Part shown: one piece after another, positions 36,296 through 55,306 of the stretch
How positions within the stretch are numbered: position 1 is the first letter of the stretch
Layout of the letters: every line of letters starts with the position of its first letter
Notes under the pieces: model-generated
The model's database searches: none
Seen by the model: the letters and a program-made list of their open reading frames with translations, nothing else
What the model was told of the DNA's origin: nothing
Translations under genes and position numbers: made by a program
Assembly: GCF_902713615.1 (NCBI RefSeq)
Contig: NW_024056013.1
Location: 631,467 to 686,772, forward strand
DNA length: 55,306 nt
Reading direction: 5' to 3'
DNA from: Scyliorhinus canicula
Lineage: Eukaryota

Positions 36296-36400
36296 CGCAC
36301 TGCCTCAGGGGACCAATATTACCAGCATTCTCATTCGGTCCCTGGCAATCAGAGGATTGGCCGTCACTGTTGAAATGCACAGAGTTGTGATCCTGTTGTC

Positions 36401-36457
<57 letters not shown>

Positions 36458-36836
36458 GATCCCACCCAGAGCCGAATTGTTGTTCCACTCCTGGATGATA
36501 TGTTTTTAGGGGCTGTTTAGGACAGGGCTAAATCGCTGGCTTTGAAAGCAGACCAAGCAGGCCAGCAGCACGGTTCGATTCCCGTAACAGCCTCCCCGAA
36601 CAGGTGCCGGAAGGTGACGACTCGGGGATTTTCACAGTAACTTAATTTGAAGCCGACTCGTGACAAGAAGCGATTTTCCTGTTCTGATGACACGTACCGT
36701 GCTCCGGCTGCGGCATGGAATTACCTCTGTCGCTGTAATATCCTTCATAGCGCCGAGCTGGGGAATAGCTCAACGATGCTGTGTCTCCCTCGATAACAAA
36801 CACCAACTCAGGAGATTGTGACACCTCCTCACGGAC
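36296..36836 (-). pseudogene. TRAV: Family-F V pseudogene split by a tRNA-Asn/SINE insert (36398-36677)
   Basis: VSQSPELVFVIEGDTASLS (36836-36684) continues as RITTLCIS (36397-36303), colinear with the other family-F copies. Confidence 0.72.
36401..36474 (+). tRNA. tRNA-Asn-GTT: tRNA-Asn(GTT), two acceptor-stem mismatches (retro-inserted copy)
   Basis: GTCTCCGTGGCGCAATCGGTTAGCGCGTTCGGCTGTTAACCGAAAGGTTGGTGGTTCGATCCCACCCAGAGCCG. Confidence 0.88.
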
Positions 36837-42081: not shown

Positions 42082-42975
42082 GGGCGGCACTGTGGCTCAG
42101 TGGTTTGCATTGCTGCCTCACAGCTCCAGGAACCGGGGTTCGATTCCCAGCTTGAGTCACTGTCTGTGTGGAGTCTGCACATTCTCCTAGTGTCTGCATG
42201 GGTTTCCTCAGGGTGTTCCGGTTTCCTCCCACAATTCCCGAAAATACATGCTGTTAGGTAATTTGGACATTCTGAATTCTCCCTCTGTGTACTCGAACAG
42301 GCGTCGGAATGTGGTGACTAGGGGATTTTCAACGTAACTTCATTGCAGTCTTAATGTTAAGCCTAATTGTGACACTAATAAAGATTATTATTATGTACAA
42401 TAACCGCTGAACAACATGAGAATTACTATCAGTCTGGGACATGGGAAGCACATGGTGCCAGGTTTAGACCTTAATAGATATCAAGTTGTCGATCGAAAAT
42501 ACCTGAAGTTTCTGTTGACACGACATGTTTTATGTTGGATTCCCACGCAGATCAGGGACAGACTTCGTCCAATTGAGACGAAGGGGCGCTAAAGGGCAAT
42601 TTAGCAAGGCCAATCCAGATTTCCTCCACATCTTTGAACTGTGGGAGGAAATCGCTTCTCGGACTTTTTGCTAAGATGACCGTGAGGTCAGGTGGAATGC
42701 GTGGATCTGGTATGTCTCTCTTCTGGGGGCCATGAATTGGATTCAATTTGAATTGGTTTTTGGAGCAGGCATGGAGCTGCATTACGGATTTGCCCCTGTC
42801 CACACTCTGAGCTCTAGCTTTGTAACTCTGATAAGGTCTTAAAAAAAACTTGAGCAGCCGGAGGAAACCCTCGCAGACATGGGGAGAAAGTGCAAACTGC
42901 ACACTCACGGCCGGAAGTGAACCCGGGTCCCTGGCGCTGTGAGGCAGCAGTGCCAACCACTGTACCACTCCTGTT
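42082..42975. mobile_element. SINE copies 42082-42392 (+) and 42550-42975 (-); further partial copies 19505-19606, 29760-29915, 41068-41212, 44600-44773
   Basis: HE1-like heads and bodies. Confidence 0.72.
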
Positions 42976-54197: not shown

Positions 54198-54244
54198 GTT
54201 TCTGTCGTGTAGTGGTTATCACATTCGTCTAACACGCGAAAGGT
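54198..54244 (+). pseudogene. 5' part of tRNA-Val(AAC), cut by a CR1 insertion
   Basis: GTTTCTGTCGTGTAGTGGTTATCACATTCGTCTAACACGCGAAAGGT; 5' flank homologous to that of the 34611 Val gene. Confidence 0.78.
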
Positions 54245-54644
54245 GAGTAGGAATGTCAGGATAGATAGGATGAATGCGTGGCTCGAGAGATGATGCAAGA
54301 GGGAGGGATTCAAATTCCTGGGGCATTGGGACCGGTTCTGGGGGAGGTGGGACCAGTACAAACCGGACGGTCTGCACCTGGGCAGGACTGGAACCGATGT
54401 CCTGGGGGTGGGGGGGGGGGGGTGTTTTCTAGAGCTGTTGGGGAGGGTTTAAACTAATGTGGCAGGGGGATGGGAACCAATGCAGGAAGTTGGAAGGTAG
54501 TAAAACAGGGACAGAAGCAAAAGGAAGTAAGGGGAAAAGTGCAAGGCAGAGAAGACATAGTCAAAAATCTAAAAGGGCGACAGTGACTGAGGGGAGCTCA
54601 GTGAATAGGCCCAGTAATAACAAAAGGAATAAAACTGGAGATGT

Positions 54645-54985
54645 AATTAGAACAGAGAACAGCACAGCACAGAACAGGCACTTCGGCCCTAGATGTTGTG
54701 CCGAGCAATGATCACCCTACTCAAACCCACGTATCCACCCCATACCTGCAACCCAACAACCCCCCCCCCCCTTAACCTTACTTTTTAGTACACTACGGGC
54801 AATTTAGCATGGCCAATCCACCTAACCCGCACATCTTTGGACTGTGGGAGGAAAACGGAGCGCCCGGAGGAAACCCATGCACACACGGGGAGGACGTGCA
54901 GACTCCGCACAGACAGTGACCCAGCCGGGAATCGAACCTGGGACCCTGGAGCTGTGAAGCATTTATGCTAACCACCATGCTGCCC
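54645..54985 (-). mobile_element. Full-length HE1-type SINE fused to the tRNA-Pro trailer
   Basis: Starts GGGCAGCATGG at 54985; tail GTTCTCTGTTCT. Confidence 0.87.
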
Positions 54986-55022
54986 CAAACATGCAGCTTG
55001 ACCAACGGAAAACCTCATCGAA

Positions 55023-55112
55023 GGGCTCGTCCGAGATTTGAACCCGGCACCTCTCGCAAATTCCAACAGCGACACACCCAAAGCGAGAATCATACCCCTA
55101 GACCAACGAGCC
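55023..55112 (-). tRNA. tRNA-Pro-TGG: tRNA-Pro(TGG) with 18-nt intron, retro-inserted copy
   Basis: Intron TGTGTCGCTGTTGGAATT; only a few nt of leader; 36-nt trailer joined to HE1. Confidence 0.88.
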
Positions 55113-55306
55113 CCAAAGATGTTAAGATTCAAAACAGAGGTAAAAAAAAACAACATAAGTGTACTTTACCTGAATGCTCGTAGTATTCGGAATAAAGTAA
55201 ATGAGTTGATGGCACAAATCATCGTAAATGACTATGATTTAGTGCCCATTACTGAAACATGGTTAAAGGATGCTCACGACTGGGAGTTAAATATCCGAGG
55301 GTATCA

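Follow-up and report, generated by a model that had tools for sequence, protein, structure and literature searches.

A probable chimeric tRNA-Asn/SINE retrocopy, and genome-wide recurrence of pre-tRNA/SINE junctions, in the shark Scyliorhinus canicula

The sequence analysed here (the window) is a 55,306-nucleotide stretch of contig NW_024056013.1 of Scyliorhinus canicula (assembly GCF_902713615.1, positions 631,467 to 686,772, forward strand). At 36392–36683 it carries a 286-bp tRNA-Asn/SINE unit bracketed by CCTGTT repeats. On the plus strand, the left repeat (36392–36397) is followed by a 3-nt leader, GTC (36398–36400), a tRNA-Asn with anticodon GTT and without CCA (36401–36474), a 33-nt 3' trailer that ends in T5, a Pol III terminator (36475–36507), a full-length tRNA-derived SINE of about 170 nt that belongs to the second of two SINE families (36508–36677), and the right copy of CCTGTT (36678–36683). 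The tRNA was recognised by ARAGORN and scored 58.4 bits against Rfam RF00005, where the threshold is 29 bits. Pre-tRNA and SINE lie head to tail on the same strand, their transcripts being otherwise unrelated. The SINE opens with AGGGGCTG, closes with a minimal 3' tail (...GCGATTTT) and has the same start and end points as the other full-length second-family copies of the window. An initial annotation of the window had described each of these parts, all of which were found at the positions it gave, and the unit is a real feature of the sequence. It had also counted one extra A between terminator and SINE, and this detail has to be withdrawn, as the A is part of the SINE's own common 5' end: AGGGGCTGG is how second-family copies usually begin genome-wide, behind tRNA or non-tRNA sequence alike, and the base preceding GGGGCTGG is A in most copies irrespective of what lies upstream. 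The A at 36508 is therefore almost certainly the first base of the SINE proper and the join is seamless, T5 being followed directly by the SINE start. The 6-bp target-site duplication (TSD) is real, standing as a single copy in five empty paralogs, and its length may instead be 7 bp (TCCTGTT, from 36391) because one T is common to the duplication and the SINE tail.

The empty paralogs were obtained with a pattern spanning the predicted pre-insertion junction and searched for genome-wide, which returned five loci (L031–L035). These read ...GAGTTGTGA, then TCCTGTT, then CTGAT...; they have the repeat once and contain neither tRNA nor SINE, and on alignment they were colinear with the window on either side while the entire 286 bp was absent. 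This is exactly the layout expected from the proposal that removal of the insert and one TSD copy restores a sequence colinear with its paralogs. As five empty sites have a single repeat, the CCTGTT repeat is not a chance match; the tRNA-Asn and the SINE arrived together, in one insertion.

Independent empty-site proof that a tRNA and a SINE inserted together is provided by another unit of the window, on the minus strand at 54639–55122, in which a tRNA-Pro and an HE1 SINE are inserted in a young LINE-like repeat. Its parts are a TSD, ACATCT (55117–55122 and 54639–54644), a 4-nt leader, TTGG, delimited by comparison with empty sites, an intron-containing pre-tRNA-Pro(TGG) (55110–55023) in which the 18-nt intron is kept, a 36-nt trailer and, after it, an HE1 SINE with a TGTTCTA-type tail. 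The host repeat is empty in more than 20 of its dispersed copies, in which the flanks are contiguous and overlap by 6 nt (ACATCT); here, as in L031–L035, the tRNA is absent along with the SINE. A SINE-less, intron-containing tRNA-Pro gene of the parental type also lies in the window (33296–33385, minus strand), with a trailer that agrees with that of the Pro unit as far as the T-run and diverges beyond it, and both tRNA-Pro(TGG) copies have the 18-nt insert at the canonical intron position. Pro copies among the fusions include intron-bearing (90-nt) and intron-less (72-nt, L081) forms. The host of the Pro unit (54200–55306; loci L090–L116) is a very young dispersed repeat, with 98–99% identity over 190 nt and copies on many chromosomes, which suggests a recently active LINE; no match was found between the tail of this repeat and that of HE1 or the second SINE.

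The third tRNA/SINE unit, on the plus strand at 3850–4267, consists of a tRNA-Asp(GTC) (3850–3921), a 36-nt trailer ending in TTTT and an HE1-type SINE. The initial annotation had assigned the Asp and Pro units the same architecture. Both units exist, but the HE1 of the Asp unit is without its first ~8 nt, and it is this 5' truncation that is found at the junction rather than two filler bases; the TGTTCTA tail is also missing. A search with the upstream flank of the Asp unit returned three ~99% copies over the whole query and four 85% paralogs in which homology ended ~35 nt upstream of the tRNA. The HE1 sequence after the tRNA-Asp (3958–4370) has no TGTTCTA repeats and runs straight into the 3' part of another SINE type, which is also present at 27072–27169, 42288–42393 and 7579–7684. 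The Asp unit is possibly a tripartite chimera of tRNA-Asp, tail-less HE1 and the 3' part of this other SINE, or else a composite SINE subfamily. It adjoins a true open V-set exon (3389–3841, minus strand; Pfam V-set E = 2e-14, YYC motif). For the Asn unit, insertion into a V exon had been proposed. This was not confirmed, as no V-set domain was detected in the reconstituted host reading frame by Pfam, PDB or BLASTP against the V-set gene of the window. The host of the Asn unit is a member of a repeated unit and could still be a decayed V pseudo-exon.

A parent family for the tRNA part was found only with a pattern anchored on the tRNA 3' end; a 28-nt trailer pattern (up to three mismatches) returned, genome-wide, copies of the same insertion only and no parent. 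The family, read via pattern matches, is an array of 17 tandem tRNA-Asn genes spaced ~2.1 kb apart at C13:36.716–36.760 Mb. Each gene of the array has GGC at -3 to -1, where the window unit has GTC, and a trailer of ~34 nt that ends in T6 or T7, followed by ACACTTT and by no SINE. When the window unit was compared by BLAST with seven parent units, the alignment ran from about -5 before the tRNA to 36507, the last T of the terminator; across the array the start of homology fell between about -5 and +2 relative to the tRNA start. The best parent unit (L066) was 93.4% identical over 106 nt. Nothing outside this stretch aligns the window to the parents, although the parent units are alike throughout. 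The suggestion that trailers should match parental tRNA loci lacking the SINE was thus borne out by the C13 genes, with homology that stops at the T-run on one side and a few bases ahead of the tRNA on the other. Homology confined in this way, together with the lack of CCA, has the limits of a primary Pol III transcript, and on this comparison the tRNA part is a copy of such a transcript before any processing. The presence of leader and trailer fits the same reading, as does the retention of the intron in Pro and Tyr fusions, where the tRNA measures 90–92 nt with the intron included. The T5 of the chimera is no longer than the T6–T7 of the parent genes, which fits termination by Pol III within the T tract. 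The exact donor gene was not found among these genes, the best trailer match being about 82–85% outside the T-run, a level that points to a lost, diverged or unsampled member of the C13 tRNA-Asn family as the probable donor.

The unit is present in many copies. The full 292 bp matched at least 40 scored genomic places at 95–99% identity; the exact tRNA/SINE junction was found at 59 places (up to three mismatches), the trailer at 98 and the boundary between tRNA end and trailer at 116, the last figure including parent-type tRNA-Asn genes on C12 and C13. All of the 30 best copies match the flanking sequence of the window, on one side or both, for about 1 kb or more. A tree built from the flanks places its 24 filled copies in one tight clade, sister to the empty sites L031 and L034. 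Kilobase-scale common flanks and a single filled clade mean that the ~100 genomic copies go back to one insertion and that the host unit was afterwards amplified segmentally. The initial annotation had offered the uniqueness of junctions as a way to separate template switching from read-through at master loci; the identical junctions found here have common flanks, which makes them products of segmental duplication. A master locus, or repeated retrotransposition, was considered as the source of the copy number and is ruled out by the common flanks and the single clade. A composite (dimeric) SINE family spreading through the genome was likewise rejected, since nearly all of the examined copies have the same flanks and the same TSD and fall in one clade. 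Within the Asn unit there is a subfamily (L036–L054; for example C69:1135336–1137363) in which an 11-nt deletion at the junction removes T5 and the SINE start, leaving the junction variant ...GATATC, and which has a further, later insertion within the SINE. The left flank of these 'ATATC' variants is the same in 19 of the 20 loci read, the remaining one (L038) being rearranged.

The acceptor stem of the copied tRNA reads GTCTCCG...CAGAGCC in the window, GTCTCCG...CAGAGAC in the majority of copies and GTCTCTG...CAGAGAC in the parent genes, so that the window copy has two mismatches, T2.C71 and C6.A67. The change T6>C, which creates C6.A67, is found in the majority sequence of 24 aligned family copies and in nearly all of the copies read. 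Since the majority has C6.A67 and does not have T2.C71, the former is as old as the insert and the latter is private to the window copy. Diversity among the copies is 2.0% in the tRNA, which is only 74 nt long, against 3.0–3.9% in the flanks, and this comparison of 24 aligned copies gave no clear signal of purifying selection on the tRNA-Asn. The new copy is at most a putative tRNA-Asn gene.

Fusions of this kind recur throughout the genome. Four further tRNA-Asn fusions have unrelated flanks, one with the second SINE (L059) and three with an HE1-type SINE (L060, L061 and L083); in these, homology to the parents by BLAST runs from -3 to -10 through the T-run or through a truncated trailer. In L061 (C12:136467619–136468648) the first 8 nt of the tRNA-Asn (GTCTCTGT) are repeated upstream and are followed by CGGC and then by the tRNA, and a candidate TSD, AACTGT, lies ahead of the GTCTCTGT repeat. 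Recurrence was measured with a pattern consisting of a tRNA B box, a gap of 30–60 nt and the HE1 5' marker, with the reversed pattern as control. There were 138 matches genome-wide and none to the reversed pattern; with the second-SINE head in place of HE1, the figures were 238 and zero. True tRNA 3' ends made up ~40 of the 100 HE1 matches listed out of 138 and ~42 of the 100 second-SINE matches listed out of 238, both counts coming from reading the listed matches by eye rather than from a computed tally. The true fusions among the matches listed have a trailer of 5–36 nt, and their SINE is complete at its 5' end, which lies at the T-run or a few bases beyond it; in the other listed matches one SINE has inserted into another at an arbitrary position. 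Direct reading of the matches listed gave about 80 tRNA/T-run/SINE junctions, involving two SINE families and 13 named isotypes (Ala, Arg, Asn, Asp, Glu, Gly, His, Ile, Lys, Pro, Ser, Tyr and Val). Trailers of the Asn, Asp, Tyr and Pro types are each joined to both SINE families at different junctions; the Asp trailer of the window unit, for example, recurs at C6:10571623 in front of the second SINE, and fusions with the Pro TTCGATGAGG trailer end at one or the other of its two T-runs. Strong terminators, T5–T8, are common among the fusions. Some junctions have no T-run at their end or have truncated trailers (L059, L083), so the 3' ends are heterogeneous.

Two controls bear on this pattern. 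The distance from a tRNA-Pro 3' end to an HE1 head fell in the 30–60-nt bin 11 times and in the 61–91-nt bin not once; these gap bins replaced a generic control (B box, N{90,120}, HE1) that gave 458 matches and was unusable, SINE B boxes being dominant among them. Matches of at least 5 nt between the flank ahead of the pre-tRNA and the sequence after the SINE tail were found in 6 of 20 real locus pairs, while mismatched pairs showed them in 8% of cases (permutation p = 0.004). Flanking duplications are thus commoner at these 20 loci than chance would give, and the pattern is strongly enriched genome-wide, with many junctions, many tRNAs and both SINE families; these were two of the points on which the original proposal had been staked. 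Pre-tRNA/SINE fusion is apparently frequent in this genome.

The same searches brought up related structures. A tRNA-like 3' end, ...GGCCATCGCA followed by ATAACAAATTAGAAACTTT, has the same trailer in at least seven fusions that involve both SINE families and different junctions, and the RNA concerned appears to be an unusually frequent fusion partner. At least 12 HE1 copies begin directly after a truncated third SINE-like element (GGTTCAAATCCCACCATGGCAG...AATTT), for example at C1:77564097, C3:75412656, C9:70894006 and C10:69575021, and are possibly fusions to SINE transcripts that had terminated prematurely. At C6:181860927–181861588, six matches ~119 nt apart make up a tandem array of a SINE fragment, in which the internal second-SINE sequence ...GGCGACTAGGGGCT runs into the head of the same element, GGTTTAGC. 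Single joins of second-SINE internal sequence to head are present at C4:45075702, C5:229493270 and C6:181472437. In a Pro/HE1 fusion at C7:175974100–175974186 the first ~20 nt of HE1 are duplicated ahead of the full HE1, as if reverse transcriptase had jumped twice at the SINE 5' end.

We propose that the 286-bp insert is probably a single chimeric retrocopy, made in one event of target-primed reverse transcription by a template switch. A LINE-encoded reverse transcriptase would have nicked the target at (T)CCTGTT and copied a full-length SINE RNA, beginning at the 3' tail and reaching the extreme 5' end. It would then have switched template to the 3' oligo-U end of an unprocessed Pol III transcript of tRNA-Asn, from the C13 array family, and continued through the 33-nt trailer and the tRNA to the end of the 3-nt leader, where the transcript starts. 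Joining of the cDNA to the target would have left the duplication of 6–7 bp, and the host unit with its insert would have been amplified to about 100 copies by segmental duplication at the DNA level. The event is read as a template jump because the SINE reaches its own 5' end, the pre-tRNA extends without loss from its 3' oligo-U end to its start site, the two have the same orientation and one duplication is shared by both. Non-LTR reverse transcriptases, those of R2 and L1 (ORF2p) among them, are well known to jump end to end between templates. Template switching has also been proposed for head exchange in SINEs (PMC5729268). The idea of SINE-coupled tRNA mobilisation by template switching, put forward in the initial annotation, is therefore supported by the empty sites, the parental trailers and the genome-wide enrichment; the switch itself, as opposed to RNA ligation, and the responsible LINE are what we infer.

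Another explanation for the data, which we regard as unlikely, is that ligation of RNA came first, so that the 3' end of a pre-tRNA was ligated, by an RtcB-type or other enzyme, to a SINE RNA and the chimera was then retrotransposed via the SINE tail. The end product would be the same, with a TSD around both parts and empty sites without both, and RtcB, as the tRNA-splicing ligase, does meet pre-tRNAs. The ends are the difficulty. The donor here ends in the U-run of a Pol III terminator, which carries a 3'-OH, and in most junctions the SINE is full length, that is, joined at its triphosphate start, whereas the L1 part of U6/L1 chimeras is variably 5'-truncated. Ligation has been demonstrated as the route for U6/L1 chimeras, yet RtcB needs a 2',3'-cyclic phosphate and a 5'-OH, and 3'-OH or 5'-triphosphate ends cut ligation dramatically (PMC6789731). 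The initial annotation had cited U6/L1 chimeras as an established product of template switching; the U6/L1 join is now attributed to RtcB ligation (PMC6789731). We rate ligation lower because a pre-tRNA ending in U-OH and a triphosphate SINE are poor ligase substrates, and the duplicated SINE 5' segment at C7:175974100 looks like repeated jumps.

Low-rate leakage of T-run terminators is general knowledge, and read-through from a tRNA-Asn gene with a SINE after its terminator could have given a dicistronic Pol III RNA that was then retrotransposed, a possibility to which we attach little weight. The many places with an identical junction, 59 with up to three mismatches, would fit such an origin, but nearly all copies examined have the same flanks (30/30 and, for the variants, 19/20) and the 24 filled ones in the tree form a single clade; no junction copy in another context was found with the genome-wide junction, trailer and boundary patterns. 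Read-through would also need a prior, exact adjacency of tRNA terminator and SINE start for each of dozens of tRNAs, and T5–T8 terminators are common among the fusions, the opposite of what it predicts. Elements with tRNA-targeted integration occur in Dictyostelium and yeast, and the tight genome-wide spacing of tRNA and SINE could in principle reflect targeting. That a SINE integrated at the terminator of a resident tRNA gene, or that two insertions hit one spot, is nevertheless barely credible for this locus, given that the empty sites of both the Asn and the Pro units have no tRNA, that the duplications bracket tRNA plus SINE and not the SINE alone, and that the flanks of the tRNA copy are unrelated on both sides to those of the parent array; the 10 nt of upstream sequence that L059 has in common with parent genes could reflect a DNA-level copy in that one case. 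Integration targeted to tRNA genes in the style of TRE or Ty3 was rejected on the same empty sites.

With template switching as the preferred reading, the machinery can be characterised from its products. A poly(A) tail, a TT/AAAA target and a TSD of 7–20 bp, the hallmarks of L1, are not those of the Asn unit, which has instead the tail ...GCGATTTT, the target GA/TCCTGTT and a TSD of 6–7 bp. As tail, target and TSD all differ, the machinery is not L1-like, and the unit is the same kind of product as a U6/L1 chimera from another family of events. The wider proposal, that LINE reverse transcriptases in this lineage habitually capture nascent oligo-U pre-tRNAs, thereby dispersing tRNA genes and making proto-SINEs, is one that we put forward tentatively and consider doubtful as it stands. 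If it is true, there is a standing pathway that spreads transcribable tRNA genes, with internal promoter and own terminator, and shapes the tRNA gene repertoire, and proto-SINEs with new tRNA heads are being made continually, so that the birth of SINEs is caught in the act. The fusions are a recurrent means of spreading copies of tRNA genes and may supply SINEs with new heads too. Both the origin of the heads of tRNA-derived SINEs and that of the thousands of scattered tRNA genes and pseudogenes in some vertebrates are long-standing questions, to which earlier answers were mostly inferred from family consensus sequences. Here whole events are kept, with leader, tRNA, intron, trailer, terminator, SINE and TSD, together with the parent family and the empty sites, and they make up a countable record of the RNAs taken up by a non-L1 LINE reverse transcriptase. 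This record points to unprocessed oligo-U Pol III transcripts, and so to reverse transcription next to nascent Pol III RNA; in mammals, by contrast, tRNA/L1 chimeras are rare antisense halves. In practical terms, such units will inflate or confuse the tRNA gene counts and SINE annotations of shark genomes.

L1 is known to give chimeric retrocopies of small Pol III RNAs, those with tRNA having been reported only recently (bioRxiv 10.1101/2025.02.02.635956), and sense fusions of unprocessed pre-tRNA to SINEs in cartilaginous fishes were not found in the searchable literature. One of the closest parallels is found in the U6/L1 chimeric pseudogenes of mammals (Buzdin et al., 2002/2003, as cited in PMC5729268 and PMC6789731; Doucet et al., 2015, PMC4476161). 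These have in common with the Asn unit a complete small Pol III RNA that ends in a T-run and is fused in sense to a LINE-mobilised template, and one TSD around both parts of a single-event insertion; the orientation, the TSD of the whole chimera and the T-run at the junction were all found in the Asn unit. They differ in that the 3' partner is a full-length SINE here and a 5'-truncated L1 there, that the 5' partner here, a pre-tRNA, has not been processed and keeps its leader, its trailer and in some cases an intron, and that the tails here are short repeats (TGTTCTA or ATTTC-like) rather than poly(A), with TSDs of 6–7 bp. RtcB, to which the U6/L1 join is attributed, acts on a cyclic-phosphate end that nascent pre-tRNAs lack. 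In mammals, tRNA/LINE-1 chimeras have been described at 21 loci (bioRxiv 10.1101/2025.02.02.635956; also Cell Genomics, 2026), mostly as half tRNAs in antisense that were ascribed to twin priming. A tRNA is there co-inserted with a LINE-mobilised sequence and a TSD, as in the shark; the shark tRNAs, however, are complete sense precursors joined to SINEs, in fusions that would number in the hundreds, ~80 junctions having been seen directly.

SINE head replacement offers a further comparison, as in the derivation of PittSINE from TguSINE1 (PMC5729268) and in the CORE-SINEs and MetaSINEs cited there. For PittSINE, too, a reverse transcriptase, of the CR1 type, was proposed to switch from SINE RNA to tRNA, and a TSD-flanked chimera of tRNA and LINE tail was described (PMC5729268). 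The event in that case was inferred from the consensus of a successful family that had lost its old head, whereas the shark fusions are individual events that preserve the entire SINE, with its old head, and the entire pre-tRNA, and the Asn unit, unlike PittSINE, did not become a retrotransposing family. In the bi- and tripartite chimeric retrogenes of Magnaporthe grisea, cellular transcripts are joined to copies of LINEs or SINEs, and the fusions are ascribed to a non-L1 LINE that jumped template once or twice (PMC2104539). The organism and the RNAs are different, and no pre-tRNA partner is known to have been described there. Set beside these systems, the Asn unit is a variant of a known chimeric-retrocopy event, and an unusually well documented one.
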